From positions 204,662,001 through 204,726,000 of the forward strand of contig CM097885.1 in NCBI GenBank assembly GCA_044892525.1: a DNA stretch of 64,000 nt, read 5' to 3'. The translations under genes and the position numbers were made by a program. The stretch comes from Schmidtea polychroa. Taxonomy: Eukaryota. How positions within the stretch are numbered: the first letter of the stretch is position 1; each line of letters begins with the position of its first letter. The notes under the pieces were generated by a model that worked only from the letters and a program-made list of their open reading frames with translations, had not been told where the DNA came from and made no database searches. Below, piece by piece: positions 9,330 through 62,865 of the stretch.

Positions 9330-12300
9330 AACTACTTTAGTGAAGAAAATGGGACTCCCCAAAAATGGTTAGAATTTGCTAAGCTAACCCTAACCTTATC
9401 GGGAATAAAGTCGACGAAAACGCTATGTTCGAACAATCCCCGCACTCCCAAGTAACTAACTGAACGAAATCGCTAATCAAATTGAAGAAATTTCAAAGAG
9501 CGAAGACCGTTCAACAAACTTTGCAACGTTCTTACAAACAAAATCAACAGGAGGCAAATCATGTCTCAACAATACATAACTTGGCGACAATAAACTAACC
9601 GATTTCCTTCGCCAACTATAACAAAAATTGGAGTACCTCCAACCAAACATCACTAATTCTGGATCAAACGATTTATTAAAGGATTTTTTTATGCAAACAA
9701 TGCCGCCAAAAATAAGACGTATTCTAGCTGCCAGTAGCAATTCGGATGTAGAAACGCTAAATTTATCCGATTATATACTCAAAACTACAATAGAAACAAA
9801 ATAAATTACAACAAACAATCAAACAACAAAATTACCGAATCAAACGAAACAACAAACTAACTAATAAACACATTCATTAGCAAATTCGACGAAATAGTTG
9901 TCGAAAACACAAATAAAAGCAGAATTAGCCGAAATAAAAGAGAAATACAACAGGCAAAATTTCAATTCAAACGAAAATAGAGACCTATACAACAAACAAT
10001 TTCAACACAAACCAACCATCAGATAATCATAACAGACAAAACTATAACCAATTTTCAGACGGAAACAACAGTCAGAACTACAGCCGCAGAAAATCCCCAA
10101 ACAATCGCTACAGAAACCAGTCCAACTCCTCAAACCGATTCAACAACTACCGAATCAACAGCCCAGAAAAAGAATCAAGAAGCGAATTTATAAATAAAAA
10201 CTACTGCTACTTTCACAAAAAATTCGGTGAAAAAGCATACAAATGCACAAGATAAAGAAGGAAAACTAAAACTGTTGATAGCACCCACATTCAGTGACAA
10301 AATCAATACATTTTTGGTGCACACAAATAACACTGACTTTCTAATTGACACAGGCTCGGTCATATAACTATTGTCTCACTACATGTACAAAATCGCAAAA
10401 AACAGAAAAATCACTAACAGCCGCAAATGGCTCTGGTATAAAAACATTTGGCCAACACACACTAACCTTAACAATAAATTCACAAAAAAATACAACTGGC
10501 CATTCACAATCGCAGAGGTACAACAATCAATAATCAGAGCTGATTTTCTAGCACACCAACTTAATAGTAGATTGCAGAAACAAAAAATTAATTGAAAACC
10601 TCACAACAGACAAGGAAACCAACAAGATTAAAACGACAGACATTGCAAAAGAAGACATTGACGTGATACAAACAAGCACACTAAATATTAAAACAATCAA
10701 AACAAACGAACACGTTCCTGAAATAACTGCACTTCTGGCAAAATACGTTAATCTCTGCGAACCAGTAACTTTCGACGGAAAATCAAATTACTCAACTGAA
10801 CACGCATAACTAATAGAGACCCAGTACACGCAAAGGTCAGGCAACTAGACTCACAAAAGACACACATCACCAAAGAAATTTTCCAGGAACTACAGGAAAA
10901 CAATATAGTAACACATTCAAATTCAGACTGGTCATCAGCACTAATTCTCAAACAAAAAGCAAACGGGGACTGGAGAGCTTGCGGAGACTATAGAATGCTC
11001 AACAAAATGACAGAACCAGACAACTACCATCTGCCGATCATAAGAGATTTAATAAACAGACTCAGAGGAGCAAATATTTTCTCAAAAATTGACTTGCGAA
11101 AAGCTTACCACCAAATTCCAATCAGAAAGGAGGGCATTTAAAAACAGCAATCGTAACACCAATCAGCATGTTCGAATACAACCGAATACCATCTGGTCTA
11201 CGAAATGCAGCAGCAACATTTCAACGTTTCATGGATTGAACGCTGAAGAACAACAAAAACACAATCGCATATTTGGACGACATATTAATACCCAGTCCAA
11301 ATAAAGAATCTCATCTCAAAGACAGATGAAGTGTTGAAAACTTTAAACACAGCAAACCTCAAAATAAACTCCCAAAAATGCGAATTTTTTGAAAAGGAAA
11401 TGAATTTCCTCGGGCACACTTTAAACGAAAAAGGCACATAGCCTATCGGGAAAAATTCAGCTCAATCCAACAATTCCAACTGCCAAATTCAAATAGAGAA
11501 CTCAGACGATTCCTAGGAATGGTAAACTTCTACCACTCCTATATACCAAATTGCAGCCAATATTTAGCCCCCCTAAACGACCTTATCAAAACAAGACGAA
11601 AAATCAAAATAAACCGGACTGAGGGAGCAATCAAAAACTTCGAGAAAGCAAAAGCAAGCTTATCTCAAGCCACACTACTTGAATACCTTGACCCAGAACG
11701 AGATTACAACCTAGCAACAGATTGTTCTGGATTTGCATCGGGAGCAACTCTTTACCAAGACAATGAATTTGGTAAACAACCTATCGGTTACTTCTCCAAG
11801 AAATTAAAACCCACCAGACAAGATACTCTTCATTCGACGGGGAACTGCTCGCAATTCACGAAGCCATAAAACATTTTCAACATCTACTAAAAGCAAGGAA
11901 CTTCAAGATCTACACTGACCACAAAATTCTTACAAACGCAATAGAAATGAAAATGCCATCACCAAGGCAAATAAGGCAATTATATTACATATCCCAACTC
12001 AACTGCACAATCAATTATATCGTGGGAGCAGCAAACATAGCAGCAGGCACTTTGTCAATAACCGAAACAGACATAAATGCACTTGAATTCCGCGAAATGT
12101 TCGAAGTCGAAACAATCAAAAAAAGCAACTAGAAACACTGAAAGAGCTACCAACAAAACATAGCCTAAAACTCAAACAAATCAACGATTGCTGGTACGAC
12201 ATCAGTAACGAAAATACACTAAGAATACTCCTACCGTAAGAATTCAGGAATAAGTGTATCTCTAAGATACACGACATCAATCATCCAGGAAACAAGGCCA

Positions 12301-14242: not shown

Positions 14243-17200
14243 CTAAAAAAGTGAATGATTTAGGGGCAAGCGATATCGGTTCTCTAACCTTTCGTCCTCG
14301 GTATTTTGTTTTTCCTGTTCTGCTTTGTCATGAGTTTCGCCTTTGAATTGGTTGAAACCTCTTTCGTTGAAACCACACCTTTTCTTGCATTGGTTTGCAT
14401 GTACCATAATTGGTTCTGCATTTCTATTTACTACTACCTGTAGTATTAAATTAGTATCCGTAGACCGTAATACATCATTAGGGCCTTTAAAATTTCGCAT
14501 AAGTTTGGGTGATAAGCCTTTCTTGTTATAGTGACTTTCTAGCATTACCTGATCTCCGACCACTATACCATGCTCTTCGGACCTACGATTGTGATAGTTC
14601 TCTGATGATTCCCGATTATACTTTAAACTGAGTCTCGGTTTTGCCCATGCCTCCTGCATGCGTTCTAGCATCTCCGTGAGATAATCCCTTTGATCCAAGT
14701 ACTGTGTTGCCTTGGGGAAGAACAACAAATCCACAGGCATTTTACTTTGCCAAAAACACATTAGATAAAACGGTGTTTCACCAGTTCTCTCATGAACAGC
14801 ATTACGATAAAAAAGATGGAATGTGGATATCCTAATCAGATTTTCCAGAATTTACATAGGACGCTAACATATTCGCCAATGTTTCGTTAAATCTTTCTAC
14901 CAACCCGTCCGTGTGCGGATGATATGGAGAAGTGTTCAATTTCAAAATGCCGAAATAGTCATTGATTCCCTTGAGCCGATTACACATAATATCCGCTCCT
15001 TGATTCGTTAGTAGTGTTGAAGGTACTTCATACCTAAAAACTATTTGTTCCACAAAATTTCTGGCTATCGTATCAGCCTTATGATTTGGAATTGGATATG
15101 CTTTTGGCCATTTCGCCAAATAGTCAAAAAATACTAGGATGTATTTTTTTCCACTGTTGAATTCTTTAAACAATCCCGACACTAGCACCGGCATCATTGG
15201 TACGTGTGATTTCCTTCCTGTGTTTCTCCTGGTGATCCAGATTTTACATGTCTGAACCATTCCTTCACATCTTGCTTGATTGTTAGCCAGAAGTACTTGT
15301 GCTTCAGCCGTGACAACATTTTCAGTGAGTTTTACGAGTGCTCCATCATAGCACTGCAACCTAAGTGCTTCCCGATATTTCTTCGGAACCATGATGATAT
15401 TATCCCTTGCATACGCGTACTTGACTAATCCCGTATTCCGACAATCTGCCAACACGACAATCCGTCAACACTAAAAAATTGGATAAGGCTGATATTTATA
15501 AAAAAATATATTTGTAGGTCATCATATTAAAATTAATTTACATGTACTTGTACAACAAATTTGCCTAAATAATCATTCAAATAAAAGCATTAAAATCAAA
15601 TACCAGTACCTTTATGATCAGTATCATTGCGACATGTTGAATGTGAGTAGTACTCTTGTAAGCAATATTTATAGGGGGTCAAAATATCTTGTCGGATAAA
15701 CTCAGAGTATATATAATAAAACGAATTAACTCATTCAAATTTATCACTGAATCAGTCAAATTATCACAAATTTTGATAAAAAATCTTGTATACCTCTCAG
15801 CCAGTTAAATTGTTTAAATATTTAATTAAAATTTTATATTAAACAATTACTAGTTGATTTTTATCTTTCAGCGGAGAATTTATTATTAAAATTTTAAAAA
15901 TATAATAAATTTAAAATGTATGTATGTTAAAACAAAAATTTATCGACTTTTTGGCAGATTGTCGCTTTGGCGGATTGTCGTACAACCGACTAATCCTTCT
16001 TCGAGTAATAATTAATCTCAATGCTCGTCCCAATACTTAGTAAATTCCGTCGTTGGTTTCCAATGCCTGTCGAATTGAATTGATCCCTTCGTCCGACTTT
16101 TTTGTTTCCATCAGATCTGCGATTCTCTTGGTTCTTCTTGACAACACAAAGAGTGTTTCTTCTAATATGTCTTCCTTGAAGTCTTCTTCTTCATTTCCTT
16201 GATACATTCGGAATAGTGCATCTGGGTTTCCGTTGTGGTATTTTTTTCTGTAATGTATTTCAATATCGTAGGGTTGTATAATTATTGACCATCTGACAAG
16301 CTTTGATGTATCTATTGTATGTTTGGTTAGCAATTGTAGAGGCTTATGATCGGTTTCAACGATTATCTTTCAACCTCATAAATACGTTCTGAATTGGCTT
16401 ATAGCGTAGACAATTGCTATAGCCTCAAGTTCAATCACTGTATAATTTTTCTCTTATAGCTTTAGTTCTCTGCTGGCATATGAAATAGCATATACATAAC
16501 CTAGGACATCTCTCTGAACTAGCACAGCACCAATAACCCGAGTGCTGCCATCTGTCATGACCAAGAATTGTTTCTCAAAATCTGGGAATCGTAGAAAAGG
16601 AGGTTCCAAGAGCAATTTCTTGAGTGTATCAAATTATTTTAATACCTACCCAAACAAATTTGACGTGGACTTGAGTCCAAAAAGCAATCAATGATTATTG
16701 ATGAGAAAATTCCCCAACATGTTCATTTGGGTTTTGCTTTCTATAATATAATTGTTATCTAAAGATTCTTCTCACGTCTCTAAGTAATATTCTAGTTCTC
16801 AATGCATCTCTCATTTCTGCCCACGTTTTAGGTACGATGAGAGCTGGTAATGCCATTACTTCATTGTACTTTTCTCTTGAAGATCCTTTCAAATATATTG
16901 GCAATCTTTGAATAATTATATTGTCCGGGTTGGCATTTGCTTTTGCCATCTTATAATATTCTGACATATATTCGGGAAATTCTCATGAATCCTCAATGAA
17001 TGCCTTAACAGGCAGAGCAGGATATCTTGCGAATACATTTGCAATAACTTCCTCTGCAATTTGCTTCTTTAGTTTAATTTGCGCACGAGTTCCAAACGCT
17101 ATTTTAAATTTTACTTCACAATATGCCAACCAAAATGTTAGGTTTGCAAGTGGGTTGTACGACTAACACACTCACTCGATCTGACTCTAAGGTGTGTTCA

Positions 17201-38408: not shown

Positions 38409-41400
38409 TTAATCACTCAATTGTACATCATCAATATAAATTTCGTCACTCAATTGTACATCGTCAATATCGATATCGTCAAATGTATTGTTCTGGGATT
38501 CATACCAATCCTCATCATCAAAGCTCGGACTCATTCCGCCAAAGAGAGGGCCAACTTCAGATACCTGGTCAACATCTGGAACATCGACTCCTAAAAAATG
38601 TCCATATGCGAGACTGGTATTAGGACCCACCCAAAGGCGCTTGTCATCGTTGTTCGACAAGGCTATTTTATTATTTTTAAAAGTAAAGAGCTGGTGGTTG
38701 CGTGTTCCTATTCTCGATTGTGGCACTGTATATACTACGTTGTTGTTGTAGCAGTCTAAATACGACTGGTGCCCGATTTGAGTCCCTATCAATTTGACTC
38801 CCTTTGCTTTTAAATGATCTTTAGCCCCTAACAAACTATAACACTTAGGGCGTAAGAAAACCCACTCGCTATATCCCAGCCCTTTACTCTCATCCTTAAA
38901 CTTCCCTATAACCGAATCCAAGCTCTTAGAATACAAAGGATGAGCAGGATCGTAATTTGACGTGTCTAGAAGGCTGTCTCTTATCATTGCCGGCAAAAGA
39001 GTGTCAAGCTTACAGTGCTTTATCTCTAAGAAAAAGGAGTCGGTGTCGCCGGCAACAATATTTATTTCGCAATTAAACTCTGTCCTATATTTCGCCAGTT
39101 CGTTATATTGCAGTTCATACATCCTCAGTTTAGACAGATCTAGTACTGTTTGACCGATGTAACTAGGCCTGTCTAAACATATAGAGTCCTTATTCAGATG
39201 GGCGGCTATCAAGTTCTCATCAATTTTGATAGATTTTCTGAAAGTTGGCTTTGAGGCATATACAATCATCTTTTCAGCTGAATTGCATAGCCTCAAATTC
39301 ATCCTTTTCTTTAAGTTCTCAACGGATTTCCCATATACGCTGTTGTTATAAAGCTTAAACAAATCTCTATATAACTCACTGGTGGATTGTGCTCTTAATG
39401 TTGTGTTTTTATTTATATAAGAACGAAATATAGGTGCTTGCGTGAATTTAACTGCTCTATAAATTTTAACAACCGTCGCACCGAGTGAAAGATAAAGTTT
39501 AAGAAGCCTCCAATGAAGAACATAGTTCTTCTTTGGCCAATGCGTGAGCATCAGCTTCTCAACTTTGGAGTTCGGTGGACACATCTTTTCTGCGGCAATA
39601 GGAAAGTCATTAAGGAAGTCATGCAAGCATTCAGGTATATCGATATCAACTTCCATAGAATACCCATATGGAAGGTTATCAATATCATCATTCACACATT
39701 CAGAAAGTATAATATCCAAATCATCATACACCCATACAAAGTCAGCATAAGGCAGATTTTGGCTTAAGGCCCAACCATACAAGTTATTAATATCAATATA
39801 CAAGAGTTCTGTGTCTTCAGAACTAGCAACATAATGTTTGTTAACAAATGTTAACCCACCCGTATCCCTCCTTCATAGAAATTAAACATTTCCATGTCCT
39901 GCAAAAGTTCTATGGGTTCCCTTAATGTCATAAGCGCTGAAGCCCATGACATACCGGGAATTCCATAGAAATTAAGAGGTTCAAGACCATTGTAAGCAAT
40001 GGCCTTTGCACGGAATTGTTGAAAATAATCTGCGAGGAGAAACACGTCTAATTAAGGGTAGGTTAACATGTAATCTAACATGTTGTTGCAATTTTGCTGA
40101 GTCCAAATAACTTGGGCTAATGCATACTCATCATTAGACACAGAATCCCAGATAGGAGGTAATTCAAGAGTCGATTCCAGAATCTCAAGAGTGTGGCAAA
40201 GTCATAAGGAAAGATACCTTTGGATCGAACAATTGCGTCATCGAAAACAGAAGAAGTTAAAGGCAGATCGGAAAGAGTCTTAACCGCTTTTGCTAAAGAT
40301 GAATTAACAAACTGCATGCTGTCAATAAAACGAACAGGCAGTTTGTTAATGTACGCGATGAGAGAGATGAATTTTTCTGTAGTGGTCGGAATAATATTTA
40401 ATTCCCAAGAAGGAAAATTTTTCAAACCATACTTCAAAATATGATGGAGATCATACCCCCTCAAATTATGAAAAACAACAGGTAACTGTTTCTGAATTCG
40501 CCGAGAAACATTGCATTTCCTACAAGCAGCACCTAAATACTTGCCTGTGAAGTGGCAATGGTCCCTAACTCTATCTCTAATGAATTTTTTACAAAGGTAG
40601 CAGGTCCTGGAATCTCTATATGCCCGTTCTTCAATGAAAGACAAAGTTTGAATAGGTTTTCGCCCATTCATTTCGTAATATGGCAGGACAATTGTGATAG
40701 CAATTTCCTCCACCTTACGAAGGAAAGACAACACACAATCCTCACCAACAAACTCATAATAAAATCTTGTGTTATTATAATTATAAATTAAAAGCATGCC
40801 TGCTGTTATTGGCAAGTGTATTTGGTGATGGGTAATATCCTCAGGTAAAATTGCCTCAAAATCGGCATATATTACGAATGGCGGGGTGACTGTTTTGGAG
40901 TAATCTTTAAATATTAAATTTTTATCTTTAGGTAGGGTGTATAATGTAGTACCTATCTGGTTCTTACTGCATATTGCAACATGAATATCAAATGCTTTTT
41001 CATGTCGAAAACCATTGAGACAATGGGGGCACCAGTTCACTTTAATTCTAACACCGCATTCACTGCTAGTGACAATTCATTAATCTTTGTAAGTTAAAAA
41101 CTGCGGTGTAATGAAAATTATCACCGTCTTCCAATAAAAGTAAGTATAAGGGTTCACCACCTATAACCTTAGATCGGTGAATTATATCCAATTTGGGATG
41201 ATGTGGAATATAATTATCATCAACTATATTTTCAAAAGGCTTAGCTGAGGTCGTTCTATAAGTTAAAACATTTATTGCTAAATTTAAATCCTTATTTTTC
41301 ATCTCGAATTTAGGAATATCACATAGTTTCATTGGACAGTCGGAAATGGGGTCAAAATTTAACTCGTCAAGATAATTTTCATAGGAACTAGCACGGTACC

Positions 41401-42480
41401 TATGACTATGTACGACATTACGTTTTAAAAGTGCTAAAATACTATATATAAAGCACATATCATCAGTGTTTTTAACGTTTACTATTGCATTTTTAGAATT
41501 TAAAGCTGATGGAGTGGGGATATAACTATGTCCAGCTAGCCTATTCATATGTGTAAATTTTGTTAATATAAAATTTATTTCTTTGATTTTAACCACACGC
41601 CATCCGCTACCTAAATATGTGAACTTTTCTATTTTCTCATTTAACTTAGTGATACCCTCTACTAGAAAATTATCTGAAAAAACCTCTGCATTATTAGAGA
41701 AAAAATTATCTCTAATTTCCCCATCTTTCTCGAATTGGATTAAAACGGCAAACTGAATTTTAATTGTGCCCATACCTACAATTTCGGCAATTAATTTATT
41801 TATAATTTTATTTGTAAGGGAAATTTGCACCAAGTTATCCTTTTCCATATTAAAGCGTAAATTTTTTCTCGCCCCCTTAAAATCGACTTCTATTTCTGGT
41901 TCATCGTCAATATCGATCGAACCACCTATTTGATTATATACGGAATCACCAGTTGTATTAATTTTAATAATTTTAGAGGGAACACCAGACCCAAAACTAA
42001 CAGCAGGACGTTTATTATTTATCACAGAAGGTTTTATCACAGAAGGTTTTATCACAGGAGCAGCTATATTCACTGGAGCAGTTATATTCACAGGAGCAGT
42101 TATATTCACAGGAGAAGATATAATCAGGGGCGAAGTATTTGTAGAGATATTTTTTGTTATAGGTCGCGAATTATTATTTACATGTGTATTATTTGCAGGT
42201 CGCGAATTATTATTATTTACATGTGTATTAAGTGTATTATTTGCAGGTGTTTTACTTTTTATTTTATTAAAAAGTTTCTTTTTATTTATTGTATACTGGT
42301 TAAGATGAGTCTTATGGGTCATATAAAAACACTTATATTTTATATTTTGGGCTGTCTCGCATATGGGACAAATATAGTAGTTGATGCCATAGAATCTATG
42401 ACCATAATACCTTTTCATGGTCTTATGACATAAATTGGAATGGCTTATTGAGGATTGGCAATATTTACGATATAATTTAC
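38409..42480 (-). pseudogene. polB: Protein-primed family B DNA polymerase (pPolB) with N-terminal region, endonuclease VII-like Zn insert, exonuclease and polymerase domains; three frameshifts (~41068, ~40190, ~39860) and one in-frame stop (~40052)
   Basis: GSGW...GHSYIPTP...AIVNVKNTDDMCF; IYADFEA; CYLC...RDHCHFTGKYLGAACRKCN; VFHNLRGYDLH; FIDSMQF; KGIFPY; YIDINNLYGWAL; KLYNNSVYGK; AGDTDSFF; LRPKCY; KAKGV; NDDKR. Confidence 0.95.
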
Positions 42481-42662
42481 CTATTAACGATAAATTATAA
42501 AAGATGATGTAAAATATTAAAATCAATTGTTATTAGTTAGTCTATTTTTATGATTATAAAAAAGGATTAACTATTAACCATTAAAAATAATAATCTATAA
42601 TATTCTTTATGTTCAAAGATAGTTGTATTTATTAATATTATTATAAGAAGAAGTGTAAGTTA

Positions 42663-42708
<46 letters not shown>

Positions 42709-43169
42709 ATTATTTTAACTAATGTAGTTGCTCATTGCAAACTACAAGGAATATTTTAAAGCTATAGTTTCTTAATCACTTTTTTTTTTAAACATTTGCA
42801 TAATTTCAACATAACAATTTCATTGTTTTCTCCATTTTCGTCATAATAATTTTTATATAACATTTTCATCATTTTCATAATTTTCATAATTTTCTTCAAA
42901 TTTTCATCATCATAATTTTCGTCATTTTCATAATTTTCAGCATTTTCATAATCATTTTTATTTTCTTCATATCATCATATTCTTCATATCATCATTTTTC
43001 ATCATTTTCTTCATATCATCAATTTTTCATCATATTTTTCATATCATCATAATTTAATAATTTAATAACATAATAAGTATTACAAAAATTTTTATGCAAA
43101 TGTTTAAAAAGTGATTACGAAAATTTTTAAATTTAAAAAATAATATATAAATAATAAATCAATTCTTAC

Positions 43170-43659
43170 ATTGAGATTCCTCGTCGGAATCATTCTCAGA
43201 GAGGCCATTATCATTTTCTGCTATCTCCTCATTAGAACTGATGACATTTTCTGCTACCTCCTCATTTGAACTGATGGCATTTCCACCATTAAATAATTCA
43301 TTATCCAAGTCCACATTAAACTCTAAATGATTTTTTTTTAAAATAATATACAAAAAATAAAATAAATTTACTTTCAGCATCATTTTCTCTTACATTAGGG
43401 GCATCAGTTTGCCCAATAAACACGACATCATCGTCGTCACTAATTGTAATCGTTCTAAAAACAAAATTAATTTCATAAAAATTAGAATAATAAATTTACC
43501 TAAAATTCGATCCACATTCAATATCGTCTCATCCTCGGTTACTTCGAACCAGTCAAAAGAATCTAAATAAAAATAATTAAAATAGAATAATAATAAAAAT
43601 AATAATTTACCAGTTGTTAAAAGACCACGTAAAATATTGTTGCTTGATTTGTTCGACAT
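43170..43659 (-). CDS. Four small acidic exons inside the element (43659-43611, 43562-43500, 43454-43372, 43322-43170); possibly the spliced 5' end of polB
   Basis: GT-AG introns of 48, 45 and 49 nt. Reads MSNKSSNNILRGLLTTDSFDWFEVTEDETILNVDRIL-E-TITISDDDDVVFIGQTDAPNVRENDAEKFNVDLDNELF...DSDEESQ, which requires one missing A at the start of exon 3. Confidence 0.55.
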
Positions 43660-44101
43660 TTTAGATTGTTGTTGTATTTTCTTCATTACAAAGGAAAACA
43701 ATTAAAATATATTAGTAAATTCTTTATTTACTTACTTTATGGATACTAAAACGAAAGAAATAAAGTTATATTTAAATAATTTAAATTAGTTATTTAAAAA
43801 TATTTAAACAATTTAGTTATTTAAACAATAATATATAGTATAATTTTATATAATATTATATAATATTATAATTTATGTATTCTAAATTTATTAATAAATA
43901 TAGTATAATTTATATAATATTGTAAATTTAATATATCCTTCATTTAATTTAAAAATTTATAATGAAGATTCTTTGAATTAAAAAAAAATTCTGTTAATAT
44001 TTCCAGACAGAAAACAACGAATTCAATATTTAAAATCTTAATTTTCATGTTGTTAGGATTGTGGCCAGAAGTTAATCGCCATCTAATCATTTTTCTCAAT
44101 T

Positions 44102-44308
44102 TCAATCATTTTTGTTCAAAACATTCAGGGGAGTTGTCATCTGGAAAGTTTCTTTGAGCTCTGTTTTGTTAAAACACTCACGGTATTTTTGAGAGACGTG
44201 ACACTGGAAATAAATTAACAATGGGTGGTCATCCATACATGTTGTTGGTCTGAGCTGTCGATTTACTTTAGAAATAGGTATATTAAAATCATTTAAGGTA
44301 TCATTCAA
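44102..44308 (-). pseudogene. Probable C-terminal remnant of an adenain-type cysteine protease
   Basis: VNRQLRPTTCMDDHPLLIYF...NKND loosely resembles the Polinton protease consensus N..QLQ....CG..C..F...ND. Abuts the truncated ATPase. Confidence 0.4.
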
Positions 44309-44622
44309 TAAATTTTTGTGAATAAATTATTAAAATCCTTTTCTTTATTGGCTTCTTGATACAAATCATCGATAATGATGACATCATCTCTCTTCAAACG
44401 ACTTGACCAGTTTTTATCAAAACCCTTTACTATTTTTATGTTTTTCAACTGACAGAAACTTGATTGCGTCAATCCATGTTCTTCATCGGCGCCTCTATGT
44501 CAATAAATATTGTTGAATTTTGTTTTGAAGAAATTAGATTTTAGTAATTTACAAACAAATAATGTTTTCCCGCTACCACTCGGACCAACGATTTGGTATA
44601 CTGCATCATTTCGTAATTCCAT
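44305..44622 (-). pseudogene. A32/FtsK-like DNA packaging ATPase, N-terminal half (not in the ORF track)
   Basis: MELRNDAVYQIVGPSGSGKTLFV (Walker A), TGA at codon 41 (44502-44500), DDVIIIDDLYQE (Walker B), DFNNLFTK, then truncated. Confidence 0.87.
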
Positions 44623-44729
44623 TTTTTAAATTTAAACTATATAATTATTGTTTATATTGATAATTTAAATGAACTCCGTTTTAAAATAACTATATATATA
44701 ACAGAGTTTTTTATAATTATTTCATTAAA

Positions 44730-45194
44730 ATGCTTTCAAATATAAATTACAGGGCAAAAGCTGATGTATCAAAAATGGTATTTCCAATGGGGAAACCACA
44801 ACAACTCATCAATAGAAGTAAAAAATATCCAATAATATATTTCAAAACTGGTAAATGTAGAATTATGAGATGTAAGGAAATAATCAAAGCTAGTGAATAT
44901 AATGTTTATGATTTAGAAATACAATCGATAACCGTAACTTCCGATATAGGTTTTTCTTGTAATTTAAATGAATTGGCTAAATTAATACCATGCTTTTATG
45001 AACCAGAATTATTTCCAGCTTTGAGATATATAAAATATAACCCTATGTGTGTAAATATATTCGCTAGCGGTAAGATAGTAATTCTTGGAATAAAAAATAT
45101 TGATTACAAATGTATAGTTGATAATATCATATCTGAAATTAAATCAATAATTGAAGGAAATGAATTTTTAGATTTTTTATTATCACTTAATTAA
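44730..45194 (+). CDS. Divergent TATA-box-binding-protein (TBP)-like protein, 154 aa, intronless and intact
   Basis: Two TBP-like repeats: LSNINYR...IIYFKTGKCRIMRCK and IQSITVTSDIGFSCNLNELA...YEPELFPALRY...VNIFASGKIVILGIK (compare canonical YEPELFPGLIYR...IFVSGKVVLTGAK). Confidence 0.88.
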   Translation: MLSNINYRAKADVSKMVFPMGKPQQLINRSKKYPIIYFKTGKCRIMRCKEIIKASEYNVYDLEIQSITVTSDIGFSCNLNELAKLIPCFYEPELFPALRYIKYNPMCVNIFASGKIVILGIKNIDYKCIVDNIISEIKSIIEGNEFLDFLLSLN

Positions 45195-45315
45195 TTATTT
45201 ATCATTGCAAATTCAATGCAATTGAAATGCATGATTCTGATTGGTCGAAATCTAATTGGCTGATGATTATTTATAACAAAATGTTTTCGGTTTAGTTGTC
45301 ATTTATTCAACAAAA

Positions 45316-45725
45316 ATGTACAACATACAAAGTTCCGCAATCACCTCAATGAAAGAGCATGCAAATTATGGTAATTTCAAATTTTTATTATTACATTAAT
45401 ATATATTTTTTTTACAGATGAATATCAATCAATTATCCTGCAAAGATTATGTTTCTATTATCCAGAATTAAATGAAATTCTACAAGATAGAGATCCAGCT
45501 ATCATTCCGGATTTGATATACAACCAAACACGAATCTGGATATTCGATATAATAAACACCTTTCTATGGGATATCAAGATAGGAAGGGGGATGAAAGAAA
45601 TGAAACCAGAAATTCCTTGCATTTTCGGATGTAGCTGTTGCAATTTCCGTTATCAACAATATGTTGAATGGTGTTTGGTGAAGACTCTGAGAAATCATCA
45701 CTCGAGTCAGATTGTATCAAAATAA
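45316..45725 (+). CDS. Element-encoded 120-aa protein with a CxxxCxCC cluster (exons 45316-45370, 45418-45725)
   Basis: 47-nt GT-AG intron gives an open frame MYNIQSS...LCFYYPELNEILQDRDP...PCIFGCSCCNFRYQQYVEWCL...VSK*. AATAAA overlaps the stop. Confidence 0.7.
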
Positions 45726-45965
45726 ATTTTTATGTTGAATTGTTTTGTTTTTGTAAATCGAAATAATAGAAATAGAAATAATAATAGAAATAGTAATATT
45801 AGAAATAATAATAATAAAAAACAATATTTATAATAAAAACATTAATGCTACATTAATGCAAATGACATGCAATTTAAACAAAGACATGTAGCAATCTGAT
45901 TGGATGATAAACAATAGTCATAGGTATAAAAACTCTGTACCATTTCATTTTAATCATAATTCACG

Positions 45966-46385
45966 ATGACAAAGAAAATTTCAAGCACTGAAAAGTCAAA
46001 AGTTGTTCCAGAACTTGTACAACCTGTTCAAATGTTCCAAAACTATAAAATGTATTTTTTAAAAGAAGAAATCAATATGAAATTGGTGTCACCGATCAAG
46101 CTAATTCCAACTAAATTTCAATTCTTATCCGGCACGCTTTCAATGTTAGATGTTAAATCTATTGATGATGTTTTCAAACGGTTGAATACGAATCTATCTT
46201 GTAATCAACATGCATTTTTCAACAACCGATATGCAAGATTTTATGATTCCTTTGATGAAATCAGCTTCAAAGAAAACGAAAATTGGTATATAACAATTGC
46301 AATCCAAGGATATAAAGTTGATAATAATGATGTGTATTCACCAATTTGGAAAATTATGTCTGCTAGACTTTCACAGTTATTTTAA
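45966..46385 (+). CDS. Element-encoded 139-aa protein, possible OB-fold ssDNA-binding protein
   Basis: Intact ORF with TATAAAA at 45925, ATTGG at 45899 and AATAAA at 46396. C-terminus WYITIAIQGYKVDNNDVYSPIWKIMSARL has a beta-beta pattern like viral OB-fold SSBs. Function is inference. Confidence 0.65.
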   Translation: MTKKISSTEKSKVVPELVQPVQMFQNYKMYFLKEEINMKLVSPIKLIPTKFQFLSGTLSMLDVKSIDDVFKRLNTNLSCNQHAFFNNRYARFYDSFDEISFKENENWYITIAIQGYKVDNNDVYSPIWKIMSARLSQLF

Positions 46386-46472
46386 TATTATATTTAATAA
46401 ATGTATTTAGTTATATTTGTTTTCGCTTATTTTCTATAAATAAATATATACTATAGTTTTAAAATACTAATA

Positions 46473-46831
46473 ATGACTACAGAAAAAGGTTAATATGATT
46501 AGTTAATTATCAAATTATTTAATATTTAGAATTTATAATAAACTTTTTATTGGAAAAATTAGCAGAAATATCTGGTGTGAAAATGGAGGATATATTATCT
46601 GTTACAAACGCATTAAATATAGACTGGGTAGCAGAGAGTGAAGATTCGGGATTTGATGAAACATATGAAGAAAACACTCAAGATGATGAGGAAAGCATTC
46701 AAGAAATTGATGAACCTATGGAGGAATTTACGGATACTGAACCGTGTGTATATAGGGATTGTATAGATCATGTTGTTGAAAACGTTATCAACTGTGGAGA
46801 TGATGAATGTGAATGTGTTAATAAATTTTAG
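46473..46831 (+). CDS. Element-encoded 105-aa acidic protein with a C-terminal Cys/His cluster (exons 46473-46488, 46530-46831)
   Basis: 41-nt GT-AG intron gives MTTEKEFIINFLLEKLAE...SEDSGFDETYEE...PCVYRDCIDHVVENVINCGDDECECVNKF*. The stop coincides with the inner edge of the right TIR. Confidence 0.7.
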
Positions 46832-47240
46832 TGTATATTTAAAGTATAATTTCTTTGTTAAAGTTTTGTCTTGAATATTTTTACCAGTAACTTTGTGAAC
46901 AATATCCATGTGACTTGTTGAGTGTGAGCAGTACCCTGGTGAGCAGTACCCTTAGGGGGACAGAATATTTNNNNNNNNNNNNNNNNNNNNNNNNNNNNNN
47001 NNNNNNNNNNNNNNNNNNNNNNNNNNNNNNNNNNNNNNNNNNNNNNNNNNNNNNNNNNNNNNNNNNNNNNNNNNNNNNNNNNNNNNNNNNNNNNNNNNNN
47101 NNNNNNNNNNNNNNNNNNNNNNNNNNNNNNNNNNNNNNNNNNNNNNNNNNGTCTTGGATTGGGCTTTAAAATGAGCTATCGTTTAATAAATTCGGATAAT
47201 GGGAACGATAACTGGCCGGAATGGCCCCATACCATCTACT
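46831..47240. repeat. Right terminal inverted repeat (partly in the N gap 46971-47150; lacks the equivalent of 36340-36661)
   Basis: Direct inverted alignment to the left end as above. Confidence 0.85.
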
Positions 47241-50200
47241 ACGGAAATATTACTGAAGGCATTCGTCAAGAAAACAACGTTGCGAGAGGATTTAAAATCA
47301 GCTATGTCTAGACAGATGACCGAGGAGCCCAAAAAATATTTTAGTATCCTAGACGAGTTAGTTGATAAAATATTGGGACATGAGTTAAATAAGAAAGGTT
47401 TAACAGAATATCTACTGGTACACTGTGCAGCCGAGAAAACTTTGAAGCGAGAATTGTGTCTAAGTGACGCCAAAGACAAATGATTTATTAGAAATATTTT
47501 ACAGGACTTTAAAAATATTTTGAGAATTCGCTCAATTTTAAAAGGTTGGACAAATTTATTACCTTTCGTTCTATTGGATTGGAGAAGCTACAGAATCAAC
47601 TCCATTACATCTGTTATTCAGAACACAAACTTCGTTACCATAGGAGAACATTGATTTTAGAAAAAACACAACTTTGGAGGAACTCAAATCATCACATGGA
47701 TATTTCCTAACCATCAATTCAGATCCTCAATTCACCACAAGAACCAGATACAAGCAATATATTCCAAGGACTTTGGAAAAACCAACTCATGTTTGAATCA
47801 GAACCATATCCGACTCTGGTTTAAAACCGAGATACCTAGGCCCACACAAACTTTCTAAGATCATTGACAAACATGCACATGTTATTATCGACGGACAAAA
47901 CCAAACAATAGGTCAGCACACCTAAAGCCTGCATTTCATTACAGGATGACACAATCAATCATGCTAACCTTAGTTCAAAAGGAAAAAAATCATTTCAAAA
48001 ATGATCAAGGTTCTAAGAAAAACTCAAACAAAGACTACACCAATCTAAATAATTTGCTAATTTATAATACAATGAATATTCCAGAGACAAGTACAATAAT
48101 TCGAAATAATATTCAAAATTTGGAAAATACCTGCAATCCAAAATCAGGCCAGACAACAAGCAACAACAAAAAAACATTCTAATCAAACCTATTAAGCGAA
48201 ACAAAATATTCAAATACGCAACAATGAAATAAACACCCTAAGATAGGCATTCAGCGAATAGAAGATCCGAAAAGAAATCTTTCGTATATAGGGTACGCGA
48301 CAGAACCGTCAGACAATTTATATGTGATTGGCTTCGATTGTTGATGGAATACCTTTTCCGATACCAATATTTTTAATTTTGAACATAATTAAATTTAAAA
48401 AAAATTTATACATAAAATAGCATGTAAACAACATATTTCAATAAATTAGCCTAATTAAATGAATTTGTTTAAAATATATATTATTTTATTATTACTACAG
48501 TATTAAACATTGATCTATAGTCAAAATCTAAATGAAGACAAATGAAATTCTTTTTAAAAATAGCTCAATATTCAAAAAAAATAAATAATAACTAATAGCA
48601 ATAATTTTTACTGAATTTGAAAATATTTTTCTGATAATGTATCAAGAAATTTAATAATCATGATCTTACCCTGATGATCGATCTTCTGATGAGGTTTCCG
48701 TACTTGTTCAGGTTGGAACCAAGTTCCTTTCATTCTCTCTCGGCCTCACGACCCGCTTATGTCGTATATCGCGCCACATCTTGGCAGAACTTTTCCATTT
48801 GATCCACTGTAATGATTTTATTTAAAATTTAATCATGGAGTATATATAATAATACTACTGGTATTTATAATGGTAAAAAGTTATTGATTCTAATCTCCTA
48901 TTAATTATTTTAATTATGCAAATAATAAATTTACTAGTTGAAATCATTTTCTCCTTAAAGCTGTTGGGCCGGAAATGTATAAAATTAATAAAGTTTCCGA
49001 ATAAGGTTTCTTCGGTTTTATTTACCTGTTTTAAACAATAAATTAAGGTGAACTGTACTAAGGTGAAGGAGGCACCAACACAGCACAAAAAAGGCATAAA
49101 GTTTATTTAAAATAACTTAAAAACATCAAATAAACAAAATTTAAAAACATAACAAGAGAAAGTAAAATTTAAACAAAAGTAATAAAATCAGAAAATGCAA
49201 GAAGTAAATATTTTTCTACAAACGGGGCAGTAAATGCGGGCAACGAGACTACCATCAAAATGCAAGTACTTCTCTGGAAACTAATTATTAGATCTTCCTT
49301 ATACTGATTACGGGCGTTAACTTTGGCAGTTTTATATTTGACGCGAACAATACCAATTTCCCATGAGTTCAGGAATTGAACTTGAATAAGCCAGCTGTTT
49401 TGCCACACGATTTAAATTCGCTAAGCTACTTAATGTTCAACGAACAAGTTGTCGGAGTGTAACAAGAGGAATATAATTTATGCAATTAAGTTAACGAATA
49501 GGTATTTTTTGTGTAGACCCATCACCAGGTCCCGATTTCTTTCCCTGTCATGTTTCTATAATCACTGGAACTAAAGCCGAGCGTTTATTTCGACTTTGGT
49601 TTAAGCATTCTTTCAGCTATGATTATAATCTGTTATCCCAGTATTTATCATTTAGATATTTATTTTCTCAGATCATGTCTACTCCAACCTGTCACAAGAG
49701 CATCCTTCGGCTGTGTTTTTCTTGCGCCGATAAGAATAATATCATCCGACGACACTTCGAGCAGATCCAACTATTACGGCTAAAAGTATACCACTTGGAG
49801 GGCACGTGATTTAACCCGACCCAAATGAAGGAATTGTAGAAGAAAATCCTGCAACTAGAATATTGTCGCGATAATCTCTTAAAGGAGATCCGAGCGTAGA
49901 GGATCCTGATCAAGGAGCAGTCACAAGCGCTCCACCAGGTATACACGAGTACGGAACTAAAAGCACAAATTTAAGAATTAATAGACCCAACCAACGTCTA
50001 CTCAGCCCATTATCTCGTGGCTGATTCTTCTATCCATCGTCGACCTGCGTGCACATGATGTATAGCGACCTCTAGTGCGGCTCCTATACCAATGGCCATG
50101 GTCAATGACTCCGCGAAGAGTGCTCTAACCATCGCCCAACCAATCAACCAAGAGACCTCATCGTCAGTCCCAGCGCGTCCGAAATGTCACCCACTCTTGC

Positions 50201-58274: not shown

Positions 58275-61200
58275 CTCGGTTAAACGCAGCTCTTCAAATT
58301 TCACTGGAAAGCTACAAGCAGTTTCTGATTTTGGACAAACCATAGAATGAGGACACTGGGAAAACCATTAAGAAATACCTGGCTTAATAAATTATTTACC
58401 GGTGAAAATATTCGTGCGGGGTTTTCGTCATTTTCAGTGCTAGCCACAAGCCAATCTCTTGCTTCGAGTATTGCTTGAAAACCAGCTTTTGTGCCTTGTT
58501 CTATGAAGATAATAAATTTGCCAGTTTTCTGCCATAAATTTGTAATGATTTCTCGTCGACTCAAATATCCACCTGCAACATCGAGTAAACTGTAGCAACT
58601 GATAACTATGTCATATTCAATGTCGACTGAGGTCGAAAAATAAGACCGATGCGTAATCCCTGGCAAAGCAGTCAGGTGTTGTTTTATTGCCCCGTCTTTC
58701 AATAAAAATTCTGAAATCGACAACAAAGTTGTTGACGCATCAACAAGAAAATGCTGCTTTATAGTGCCTATCGGCCAAACACTGTTGGCTGCCCTAAAAA
58801 TACCTATTATCTAATTCATTACTTACAAATTAAACATTCTGTAAACCAGCCACTTCAACTAATAACCAGTATTTTTCAACATCTTTTTAATCGTGTCCTT
58901 TAATTTAATTTAAATTAATTTCTAAGGTAAGCAATATGAAACCTTTACTATTTAATTACCGAGAAATTTATACCTATTAATATCCATAAATACATAGGAT
59001 TATAAAAACATCTTATCAAATGTAAAAGGCTAAAAAAGAAATTTAACTTAATATTTTACTTATAGTTTGTCAGTAAAATATTAGGTTTAACTTATTTCAA
59101 AATAAAATAAATGAAATACTATAGAGCAGAAATGGGTAACCTTTTATCAACAATAGGTGAGTGAAAATATTTTTTAAGTGTATATGAGAAAATCTTTTTC
59201 TAACTTTCAACAGTTTTATTAAAACCGTGTACTAAAAAGTGCCTAATCAATTTTATTAATAAGGAAAATGAAATTCAAATTTAATATATAATTACAAAGA
59301 TAGAGTAATAAAATACCAATAAAATTACAGTAAGGAATTGGTATATTTTATTTAACCCTTTCCTATCCTGTGCTTATAAAAATTATATATAGTGAAATGA
59401 GTAAATTTAGCTGCATGAGGTTTAACTTTGACTTTGAACTAATAAGAATACAGACATATCAATATGAAAATACCTCACGTTTCTATATATATATATATAT
59501 TTCTGTCGAAGAAAAAACAATTTGTAGGAGTAATCAATTATATAAGTTTCTAATATTTGATATATAATATAAAGCAATGTATCTATTTTCTTAGAAATAC
59601 TTCTTAAAGATGGTCAACCAAATGCATTGTGAGGAAGTTTTAGACAAAGATTTTTTCTAGTGGGTGCTATTAAATCTGAAAGTAATGATTGAGGATGTTA
59701 GTTTGAAATTAGAAAGTGATATGAAAATAGAGGAGAGTTCATATGATTAGGACAACGAGATTAGCGATACTAAGGATCAAGATCGTTGAAAAAAGATGAC
59801 ATCCAACAGATTGTTTCGAAAAATATCATTCCCGGAATAATTACATTTTATAAACTGTAAAACTAGAGACAAATTGAGAATGTAGAAGACTAATTTCAAG
59901 TTCTGTGATATAAAATTATTATTTCTTAAAGCTCTAGTATTTTGATCACCCACTGTAATTCCCCAAATGTATTGTTTTTTGGTTAGCATGGTTCTCAATT
60001 TGGATTATTGTTACGTTTTCAGAAAAAAGCGGATCCAGTAAATACAGAGTCATATACCAAAAGATTACCGCAGAAATTTCAATAAGCATTGCAATGTTTC
60101 AGGTTTTTCCATAATCGATTAAATCTGTATAAAATCTCTATTTACCTTTTCATTGTTTCTTGAGATAGTTTATAATTCCATTATTAGCAGGAAATACCGT
60201 ATATACTTGCGTATAAGTCGAGTAAATTTTAAGAGGTTTTTAAGTCCTAAATTGGAAACCCGCGTATAAGTCGTAGTAACAAAAATAAAAAAAAGGTTTA
60301 ATGATTTCATTAAAAATTAATTTGTACGTTTTTTGACCAGCGTATAAGTCGAAGTGGCTATTCTGACTTGAAATTTGACGTAAATTTCTCGACTTATATG
60401 CGAGTATATACGGTAATTGATGTTTCACTGCTCTTCTATGTCCAAGATAATGCCAGTTTGAATAGTTGCCAATGAAAAGCATGCTTGATTGCTATAGCTT
60501 TAGAAAGTAAAAATAAATTATCATTTATTTCAACCTCCACAAAGTATCAATTCATAACAATAGGACAGAAGTTTCAATTAAATTACGATTAAGAGATATC
60601 TTCAAGTAACATCAGATATCTTTTCATTTTTAAATTACTATTTTCATATAAAGAATTAAATTTTTCTTTTAACGATATAAGTTGTTTTCCAAGTTCTTTA
60701 TCCGTTTTTCATAAAATTTACTTCCTTTCAGCTTCATTAGCATTAACTTTTACAGATGATTCCAATTCATATACTGCTCCGCACGAACTGATATGATCTC
60801 ATCATATTTCATACTTGTCGATTCTTGTTTTTTACTCCGAATGTGTATTTATGTTACTACTTAAAGAAAGTGGGGTACCCCCACCCCTTGCTCCTGGTTA
60901 GTGCATAAAATTTCTATTTTCCTCTAGCAGTGTGGCACTTTTAGCTAATTCTCTAAAAATCATATTTGCACTCAAAGGACTAAAATAGCAAAGTTTATTT
61001 CCATATAAGACCAATTAAAATTTTATCGATTAATTTTCATAATATATCTGACCAGTTTTTTACATCAATTTCCAAGTTGTTAAATCACATGAAAGCCATG
61101 GGCTCAAATTGATCAAGTTTTCGAAAAAAACTTTTAAAAATACTTTGGTAGAAATTAAAAATATATTAATTATACTTTTAAAAAATATTAATTATATATA

Positions 61201-62205: not shown

Positions 62206-62865
62206 TTGAGAAGATTATTTTTTATAAATAAATTCCTTTAAAAATTAGTTTTAATAAGGTTATCAAAAGTCGCAAATAAAACTAATTTAAAAAAATCAAT
62301 AATATCAGAGCACAATTGATTATAATAATCTTCAATTCTTTTTTAAACCTATCTATCAATATTTTGTTTTATATTCAATACAAATTTGTTGATCGATAAT
62401 CTTAAATGAGAAATGAAGACAAAAAACTCGAAAAAAAAGATCATTGGTTGAAGATTTTAATGATAAATTAATAGAACAGATAAAATATTGCAACACCCAC
62501 CAGACAGCACTACCGACTCCTGAACCGAAATCATATAAATTAGCCGGCATGAATTTTGGACATCGTTTGCGAATTTCATAGAAAACTTTGCAACTGGCCG
62601 CAAAATTTGGGGCTAACCGACCGACCAAATACAAATTCGACAGATTTGTCGAATATCTAATAGCATTTGGCTTATCGTCTATTTCGTATTTAATAGATGC
62701 TTCAACGCTTTTCCTGAACATTTGGGAGATTACTTTATAATTGACAGCATCATTGAGAAATAAATCTTCAGATTTGCCATCATTATTTAATGAATTTTCC
62801 ATTTCAAGCATATTAGAAGATATTTTCTTTTTTGCGATATTTTGAATATGTGTTTGTAGATTTTT
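58275..62865 (-). CDS. METTL17: METTL17/RSM22-like mitochondrial small-subunit assembly methyltransferase, partial (exons ~62865-62501, 58793-58400, 58355-58275)
   Basis: YLVGRLAPNFAA...LYDFGSGVGSAVW|AA; YDIVISCYSL; IFIEQGTKAGFQAILEARD; IFSP|CPHSMVCP...CSF. GT-AG junctions are phase-compatible. First and last exons not located. Confidence 0.87.
60197..60413. mobile_element. pogo/Tigger-type MITE in a METTL17 intron
   Basis: TIRs CCGTATATACTTGCGTATAAGTCGAG / CTCGACTTATATGCGAGTATATACGG with TA TSD. Confidence 0.85.
61283..61922. mobile_element. hAT-type MITE in a METTL17 intron
   Basis: TIRs CAGGGTTGCCAAC / GTTGGCAACGCTG; perfect 8-bp TSD GATGTTTA; subterminal TATAGTAC repeats. Confidence 0.87.

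Follow-up and report, generated by a model that had tools for sequence, protein, structure and literature searches.

Does a small virus-like transposable element carry a TATA-binding protein (TBP) of its own, and what would such a protein do? The question is raised by a 64,000-nucleotide stretch of the Schmidtea polychroa genome (GenBank assembly GCA_044892525.1, contig CM097885.1, positions 204,662,001 to 204,726,000 of the forward strand; referred to here as the window), in which a decayed Polinton/Maverick-type element includes an uninterrupted ATG-to-stop open reading frame (ORF) for a TBP-like protein. We find that this ORF encodes a true TBP-family protein of about 150 aa, here called the mini-TBP and specific to its lineage, and that the mini-TBP is a regular gene of one Polinton/Maverick (adintovirus-like) lineage.

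44730-45194, plus strand: mini-TBP gene, intact, 154 aa, with a reduced repeat 1 (residues 1-58) and a full repeat 2 (residues ~60-153)

An earlier sequence-only reading of the window had described this gene as an intact, intronless TBP-like ORF of 154 aa with two repeats, the first of them shortened. Pfam, a search of solved structures, AlphaFold2 and Foldseek all bear out the TBP assignment. The mini-TBP matches the Pfam TBP family (PF00352) at residues 62-125 with 52 bits (cut-off 22.9, E 6e-14). A search of the sequences of solved structures returned TBPs exclusively, with an archaeal TBP at the top (E 1.7e-17), and the TBPs in the PDB were matched by the family profile at E 1.4e-21. In these alignments, residues 61-140 of the query fall onto both repeats of each solved TBP, and the sequence methods (Pfam and the PDB search) detect a single full repeat at residues ~60-140. 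Residues 1-58 did not align to solved TBPs when tried as a single sequence or as a family profile. However, when profiles of the N-terminal and C-terminal halves of the family were compared with one another, residues 21-52 aligned to residues 94-125 (E 2e-5). The N-terminal half would accordingly be a repeat that has been shortened, which is how the sequence had been read. The N-terminus is common to the window ORF and all 52 aligned relatives, and an upstream exon is therefore not needed.

The AlphaFold2 model of the mini-TBP, which was built from 53 family members, has a mean predicted local distance difference test score of 95.5 and a predicted template modelling score of 0.84. In the model, residues 1-58 are folded into four strands, with no helix as long as four residues, and residues ~60-153 form a full TBP repeat with both helices, the long C-terminal helix coming last. 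When the model was compared with the PDB using Foldseek, 44 TBP chains were recovered (E 3e-9 to 2e-6, query-normalised TM 0.59-0.72, identity 22-28 %), and the next matches had E values of only 0.02.

Residue conservation was counted over the 53 mini-TBP sequences. F38, F95, F111 and N6 are invariant (53/53). The second repeat thus keeps both of its Phe positions, F95 and F111, as the sequence-only reading had noted. It had also noted that the first repeat keeps one of the two, and this holds for F38, with a residue other than Phe at the position equivalent to F95, yet a conserved Phe, F18 (49/53), lies a few residues upstream of that position. The replacement of the S1 Asn of repeat 2 was likewise correctly read, with Ser found in 52/53. 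E91, P92 and E93 are also invariant (53/53) and L94 is nearly so (51/53); the resulting Glu-Pro-Glu-Leu-Phe-Pro aligns to the same stretch in repeat 2 of archaeal and microsporidian TBPs. The family is basic, with a median isoelectric point of 9.4 and a median net charge of +11, and the mean pairwise identity is 48 % for the N-terminal half versus 50 % for the C-terminal half. Three Cys residues are also conserved (C43 in 53/53, C48 in 50/53 and C107 in 53/53), and may form a metal site, a disulphide or neither.

The mini-TBP shares with cellular and archaeal TBPs (PF00352) the fold, a basic character, and a complete second repeat in which both the Phe pair and the Glu-Pro-Glu(-Leu) loop are present. 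It differs from them in a first repeat of ~58 rather than ~90 residues that is helix-less in the model, in the lack of an N-terminal tail, in the Ser that replaces the S1 Asn of repeat 2, in the Cys triad and in its mobile, virus-like carrier.

A word-indexed protein search recovered 94 relatives of the mini-TBP (100-270 aa, 31-95 % identity), all of them from metagenome or read-archive assemblies. An exhaustive profile search, with clusters defined at 50 % identity, gave 59 clusters at E<=1e-30 and 729 clusters at E<=1e-10, and most of the top matches span the whole mini-TBP profile in one stretch. Elsewhere, no identical copy of the window mini-TBP has been recorded. IMG/VR has hardly any trace of the family, as a scan with the family alignment found a single weak locus there, L017, at 33-37 % identity. 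L017 (IMGVR_UViG_3300020438_000074, 44.7 kb) has its TBP-like match at 10001-10306 and upstream regions dominated by TATATAT-rich runs, and is probably from another group of viruses.

Genomic context was recovered for L001 and L002 (20-22 kb), L005-L008 (16 kb), L009-L013, L015, L016 and 55 metagenome loci. The mini-TBP gene stands among the same gene set in nearly every contig long enough to judge. An A32-like ATPase, an rve integrase, a 409-aa capsid-size gene and PolB are found beside it in L001, L002, L005-L013, L015, L016, L020, L023, L052 and L055, and about 30 shorter metagenome contigs have at least one further gene of this set beside it. The recurrent set also includes a 109-aa gene, two or three paralogues of 330-345 aa, a 105-129-aa gene, and genes of 120 aa and 157-171 aa. 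The rve integrase sometimes carries a chromodomain and the ATPases are full-length (Pox_A32, with faint Pfam matches), and the capsid and protease candidates (the 409-aa gene and genes of ~120-170 aa) gave no significant Pfam or PHROGs match. Two gene layouts occur, with the mini-TBP gene either adjoining the ATPase gene or directly following the 409-aa/120-aa/160-aa block. In the 5-kb contigs L018 and L028, homologues of accessory genes are all that is found beside it. The recurrence in dozens of independent contigs beside PolB, integrase and ATPase supports the earlier proposal that this is a gene of the element lineage.

L075, whose PolB is only 39 % identical to that of the window, also has a TBP of the same kind (hhalign probability 99.9 %). 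The L075 protein has a longer N-terminal half than the window mini-TBP, which suggests that the first repeat may have been reduced stepwise.

Among six mini-TBP genes, the proportion of non-synonymous differences was 0.21-0.43 versus a saturated synonymous proportion of 0.61-0.85, and the ratio of non-synonymous to synonymous rates (dN/dS) was 0.12-0.32 where computable. Near-identical loci differ by 0-1 substitutions, too few for dN/dS. The family is under long-term purifying selection. The sequence-only reading had named two findings that would have overturned it, the lack of a TBP fold and a one-off, near-identical retrocopy of the host TBP. Neither applies; a recent host retrocopy was rejected given the wide family, the N-terminal half that is reduced throughout and the linkage to element genes.

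Some further features of the relatives were noted. The near-identical 16-kb element represented by L005-L008 was seen in at least 13 assemblies. In many small assemblies from one sample series it is the second or third longest contig, and it looks like a circulating or high-copy element, not old genomic debris. Host-like accessory genes that adjoin the mini-TBP gene in sister elements include a Bcl-2 homologue (L005-L011), a TRAF/MATH gene (L016, 14488-15477), a RING gene (L009, 10662-11075), a phospholipase A2 gene (L075, 13833-14243) and C2H2 zinc-finger genes. The apoptosis and signalling homologues hint at animal hosts.

A gene of this type is not wholly undescribed, although a single mention was found in the literature searched. 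In the legend to Figure 5 of Starrett et al. 2021 (PMC8502044), a gene of MELD viruses that have an adintovirus-like PolB is marked 'TBP', and the text of that paper notes Bcl2 and IAP homologues. The MELD viruses resemble the elements described here in having a TBP-like gene in a mid-size element with PolB and integrase, with TRAF and Bcl-2 homologues alongside. However, the 'TBP' is a bare label in a legend, to which no sequence, structure, distribution or promoter analysis is attached, and the label is compatible with the same family or with another. In the recent surveys consulted on Polintons and Polinton-like viruses, neither TBP nor TATA nor promoters are brought up.

In the upstream regions of called genes from five loci, TATAAAC(A) recurs ~35 nt before ATG codons. 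The box was counted in all loci, using distinct contexts only and ORFs of at least 50 codons. Of 164 distinct sites for TATAAACA, 73 are 31-40 nt upstream of an ORF start, and the corresponding numbers in this bin for the control boxes are 2/254 for TATAAAA and 3/205 for the reverse complement. The distance from TATAAAC to the ORF start peaks at 33-37 nt, and each locus has 10-12 copies compared with the 4-5 expected from dinucleotide shuffles. The two bases 3' of the C of the box are A in 83 % and A in 70 % of sites, and the flanks are otherwise unremarkable. In L075, ATAAAC(A/G) is retained and the leading T is often lost. A literature search did not find TATAAACA together with Polinton-type elements.

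The box is not distributed evenly over the genes. It was found upstream of 14/21 ATPase genes (at 32-37 nt), 9/14 of the 409-aa capsid-size genes, 10/16 of the 109-aa genes and 10/18 of the 157-171-aa genes. At this distance it was found upstream of 0/49 mini-TBP genes and 0/31 integrase genes, and an ordinary TATAWAW box is present upstream of 19/49 mini-TBP genes. Thus, a sharply positioned box marks the packaging gene and the candidate capsid genes and is missing from the mini-TBP gene itself. In the window element the ATPase and mini-TBP genes have the following upstream sequences.

44650-44656, minus strand: TATAAAC box and sole copy of it in the element, 34 nt upstream of the ATG of the ATPase gene

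44691-44701, plus strand: ordinary TATA-like run, 39 nt upstream of the mini-TBP ATG, with TCATT right before the ATG

TCAT(T) immediately precedes the mini-TBP ATG in the window, L001 and L002, and CTGATTGG-type CCAAT boxes are found further upstream of several accessory genes. The two sequences singled out by the earlier reading, TATATATATA at 44691 and TATAAAA at 45925, are both present. Its suggestion that the protein could be a private basal factor favouring AT-rich promoters gains indirect support from the two-class promoter layout, but needs to be amended in that the promoters carry a specific TATAAAC(A) box and are not simply AT-rich.

We propose that the mini-TBP is made by the host machinery from an ordinary TATA-type promoter, and that it would then bind the TATAAAC(A) boxes of the element 32-37 nt upstream of the ATPase gene, the capsid-size gene and other module genes. 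At these boxes it would recruit host TFIIB and RNA polymerase II (Pol II), largely blind to the regulators that act on TBP's N-terminal lobe, and the outcome would be a separate, probably late, promoter class for the element. In solved TBP-DNA complexes the N-terminal half covers the 3' part of the box. If bound in this orientation, the altered N-terminal half of the mini-TBP would cover the unusual 3' half of TATAAAC(A). On the reading that we favour, the mini-TBP would be a virus-encoded basal factor for virion-module promoters.

The choice of TFIIB as the partner follows published contacts. Two glutamates in a loop within TBP's C-terminal lobe contact a conserved Arg and Thr of TFIIB/TFB, and the N-terminal lobe is the surface for TFIIA, TAF1, Brf1/2, Mot1 and NC2 (Ravarani et al., PMC7221094). 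E91 and E93 of the mini-TBP fall on the Glu-Pro-Glu of archaeal and eukaryotic TBPs in the alignments. None of the related loci has a gene on record that gave a Pfam TFIIB match.

A first alternative is that the mini-TBP is a general substitute for the host TBP, which binds any TATA-like box, whether of the element or of the host, and raises transcription of the element or frees it from TFIID control, with TATAAAC(A) being read by the host TBP or by a forkhead-type factor. The conserved TFIIB-contact loop and Phe positions would suit this as well, the box begins with the canonical TATAAA, and the ATAAAC(A/G) of L075, with its leading T often lost, fits a reader other than a TBP equally well. 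However, loci whose proteins are only ~50 % identical still share the A-rich extension and a strict C at position 7, and the box is missing from 49/49 promoters of the TBP gene, as a hierarchy of factor and targets predicts. The half of the protein that is altered is also the half that lies over the 3' part of the box in solved TBP-DNA complexes. We regard a general substitute as possible but improbable.

The mini-TBP might instead act as a decoy that soaks up host TFIIB or other partners of TBP, or blocks host TATA boxes, and so shuts down or re-routes host transcription without nucleating any itself. Such a role was among those suggested from the sequence, with NC2 and Mot1 named as targets. 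The regulatory surface of the N-terminal lobe has been removed and the TFIIB-contact residues kept, and the sister elements carry other genes that manipulate the host (Bcl-2, TRAF/MATH and RING). But the surface for NC2, Mot1 and TAF1 is then missing and the protein is no decoy for those, and the candidate DNA-kinking Phe residues, the S1 Asn of repeat 1 and the strong basic charge are all conserved, though they would be superfluous in a pure protein decoy. This explanation is in our view decidedly unlikely.

TBP folds bend DNA sharply, and the mini-TBP gene adjoins the packaging ATPase gene in many loci. A bender of element DNA with no part in transcription, used for starting replication at the termini, for integration or for packaging, would be in keeping with both. 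It would leave the invariant Glu-Pro-Glu TFIIB-contact loop without a role, and the linkage to the ATPase is not fixed, as in a second group of loci the mini-TBP gene comes after the capsid-size block. In addition, a search of the window element's terminal repeats gave no TATAAAC box. We consider a bender very unlikely.

Several points weigh against the promoter-class reading itself. The binding of the mini-TBP to DNA, its choice of box and its partners are steps that we infer, and the link between the mini-TBP and TATAAAC(A) is one of co-occurrence only. The box opens with six bases that make up a canonical TATA box, which the host TBP might serve, and ATAAACA also fits the site of a forkhead factor. 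The helix-less N-terminal half depends on a predicted, though very confident, model. The terms 'early' and 'late' are assumed by analogy, and the 409-aa gene may encode a capsid protein, for which it is a candidate by size. Finally, loci with distant PolB genes did not provide a clean TBP-less control set, as L075 has a TBP, L073 is a partial contig with the box, and L074 (from a spider genome) is degraded. Taking all of this together, we give roughly even chances to the account as a whole, namely a mini-TBP belonging to the lineage, a promoter class with its own box that is served via host TFIIB and Pol II, and a window copy that is a relic.

Virus-encoded proteins with a TBP fold are known from other systems. 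The TBP-like proteins of giant viruses (Nucleocytoviricota) match the mini-TBP model in a Foldseek search of BFVD at E 1e-7 to 1e-3, but they are 190-550 aa long and only 8-22 % identical to it. In giant-virus TBPs the TFIIB-contact Glu is only ~40 % conserved, and these TBPs pair with virus-encoded TFIIB-like proteins (PMC7221094). The mini-TBP is the reverse case, with both TFIIB-contact Glu residues invariant and no gene with a Pfam match to TFIIB on record in its loci. The closest functional parallel to the proposed working principle may be the TBP mimic of beta- and gamma-herpesviruses (ORF24 of Kaposi's sarcoma-associated herpesvirus, BcRF1 of Epstein-Barr virus and UL87 of human cytomegalovirus), which reportedly marks a non-canonical TATA-like box at late genes and brings in host Pol II (PMC7498053, PMC12529657). 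The analogy would be functional only. The herpesvirus mimics are large proteins that bind the C-terminal domain of the polymerase directly and act with five other viral proteins. BcRF1 has no meaningful similarity to the mini-TBP model beyond the fold class (Foldseek E 0.015, TM 0.34), and nothing comparable to the other five genes of the viral pre-initiation complex was found in the mini-TBP loci. Among host proteins, factors of the TRF2/TLF type are paralogues of TBP with two full lobes that serve a distinct set of promoters. The mini-TBP differs from them in being borne by an element and in keeping the Phe positions.

Descriptions of Polintons, Mavericks and adintoviruses usually centre on a fixed set of core genes (polymerase, integrase, ATPase, protease and capsid), and to our knowledge the control of their expression is essentially unexplored. 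The broadest form of our proposal is that a widespread lineage of them runs a two-stage Pol II programme via a minimal TBP, which would have kept the TFIIB loop, shed the helices of the N-terminal lobe and come to read a private TATAAAC(A) box. We hold this tentatively, as an idea with rather less than even prospects. If it is true, nuclear virus-like elements of only 15-20 kb would use the basal machinery itself to control which promoters are chosen, and a temporal gene programme of the kind seen in large DNA viruses would extend to small elements. No smaller natural TBP than the mini-TBP would be known, and such a minimal protein, with one lobe reduced to its sheet, would bear on how DNA binding, TFIIB docking and regulation are divided between the lobes. 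The box would also provide a simple sequence signature for annotating the genes of such elements. For the window locus itself the result is modest, as this copy is probably a dead one.

The window has ~29 % G+C and is crowded with transposon debris. The element that carries the mini-TBP gene had been described as bounded by terminal inverted repeats and a target-site duplication, and these boundaries were found.

36311-47240: Polinton/Maverick-type element, decayed and internally deleted, 10,930 bp, defined by inverted termini and target-site duplication; N runs at 37903-38058 and 46971-47150

36305-36310: left copy of the 6-bp target-site duplication ACGGAA, identical to the right copy

47241-47246: right copy of the 6-bp target-site duplication ACGGAA, identical to the left copy

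36311-37581, plus strand: left terminal inverted-repeat region, made up of the 29-nt terminus, a ~310-bp insert, a ~414-bp subterminal tandem duplication and a 140-nt arm (37442-37581)

46831-47240, minus strand: right terminal inverted-repeat region, broken by the N run 46971-47150

38409-42526, minus strand: protein-primed PolB region, broken, with an N-terminal part, Endonuclease VII and PolB (Pfam DNA_pol_B_2 and Endonuclease_7)

44311-44622, minus strand: remnant of an A32-like packaging ATPase gene, N-terminal 104 codons with the P-loop and 1 in-frame stop, C-terminal half deleted

45966-46385, plus strand: 139-aa ORF, a recurrent neighbour of the mini-TBP gene, with TATAAAA upstream at 45925

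The same 25-nt terminus, AGTAGATGGTATGGGGCCATTCCGG, is present in inverted orientation at 36311 and 47240, and inverted arms of 140 nt (94 % identity) and 63 nt (98 % identity) are found in the terminal regions. Target-site duplications of 6 bp are typical of Polintons. The ~310-bp insert (36340-36650) has a short inverted repeat at its bounds and tandem units of the 'caaggtcat' type inside, and the copies of the ~414-bp subterminal tandem duplication (36599-37375) are 83 % identical. Neither is present in the part of the right arm that is not N.

Genes in the window were sought by tblastn with the proteins of intact relatives, and only four recognisable element genes remain, namely PolB, the N-terminal part of the ATPase gene, the mini-TBP gene and the 139-aa ORF. 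The ~800-aa unit of Endonuclease VII and PolB is spread over three frames, with at least 2 frameshifts and 1 in-frame stop. It is 55-66 % identical to the PolBs of related contigs (63 % to L005). Among named PolBs the closest, which come from a spider, a mite, a beetle and an abalone, reach only ~40 % identity. The Endonuclease VII domain precedes the polymerase domain in the PolB of this lineage, as seen in the window (40117-41040, minus strand), P0103, P0125 and P0147. The ATPase remnant is 63-71 % identical to residues 1-104/110 of the L005, L009 and L012 ATPases, and the homology stops at 44311. The orientation of PolB versus the ATPase gene is inverted relative to every intact relative.

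The integrase, the capsid-size genes and the protease left no trace in the window element in this search. An rve integrase is present in L001, L002, L005-L013, L015, L016, L020, L023 and L052 and has no counterpart in the window copy, which is therefore a deleted derivative. An assembly gap was rejected as the reason for the missing structural module, as the interval from PolB to the ATPase remnant has no N run, and the loss is a deletion in the sequence as assembled. The sequence-only reading had counted an ATPase, a protease and PolB as damaged neighbours. This is right for PolB and the ATPase, but no remnant of a protease was detected, and the block that runs from the middle of the ATPase gene through the integrase and the capsid-size genes is absent, not damaged.

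The 139-aa ORF matches ORFs adjacent to the TBP gene in L002, L015, L001, L020, L023, L016 and L005 (tblastn E 5e-24 to 3e-8), and its homologues are head-to-head with the mini-TBP gene in L001 (5271-5642), L002 (5082-5546) and L015 (15732-16103). It has no Pfam match and a protein search gave one close relative; its structure model, from two sequences, has a predicted local distance difference test score of 34.

The mini-TBP frame in the window is intact although PolB and the ATPase gene are broken, a contrast that the earlier reading had pointed out. One possible explanation is domestication, in which the host kept the window copy after the element died. A sister copy, L014, is available for comparison in a 1.2-kb contig from the same sample series as L005-L008, and is 97 % identical to the window. 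Between L014 and the window ORF there are 13 substitutions, of which 6 are synonymous, 6 are non-synonymous and 1 creates a stop in L014, and this is fewer non-synonymous changes than neutrality predicts. However, much of the synonymous excess can predate the insertion. Of the single substitutions that are possible in the window ORF, 5.9 % would create a stop, and the chance that a frame of 465 nt stays open is 0.68-0.47 at 1.4-2.8 % divergence per copy, whereas a region the size of PolB is almost surely hit by a stop at the same divergence. For so short an ORF an open frame is thus unsurprising, and it is no evidence of selection at this locus and needs none in the host. The stop in the sister copy also speaks against domestication, as does the window copy's private change at one of 18 nearly invariant positions, where the sister copy does not deviate, and an exact copy of the protein is not on record elsewhere. 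We see domestication as hardly likely at all. Most likely the window mini-TBP no longer functions and is a relic left by an element that is dead and internally deleted.

The block at 45207-45865, between the mini-TBP gene and the 139-aa ORF, is missing from the sister copy L014. It holds a candidate small Cys-rich gene (~45317-45728, plus strand) with a candidate short GT..AG intron, and upstream of this gene are a TATA-like run and two CCAAT boxes of the CTGATTGG type. Other parts of the window contain a pogo/Tc5-like DDE transposase whose sequence is divided between two ORFs, pieces of a long terminal repeat retrotransposon (RNase H and integrase), and two exons of an Rsm22/METTL17-like host gene, ~3.6 kb apart. 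Jointly, these transposase, retrotransposon and host-gene features are at 3404-5094 (minus strand), 11519-11869 (plus strand), 14832-15455 (minus strand), 58301-58726 and 62356-62811 (minus strand).

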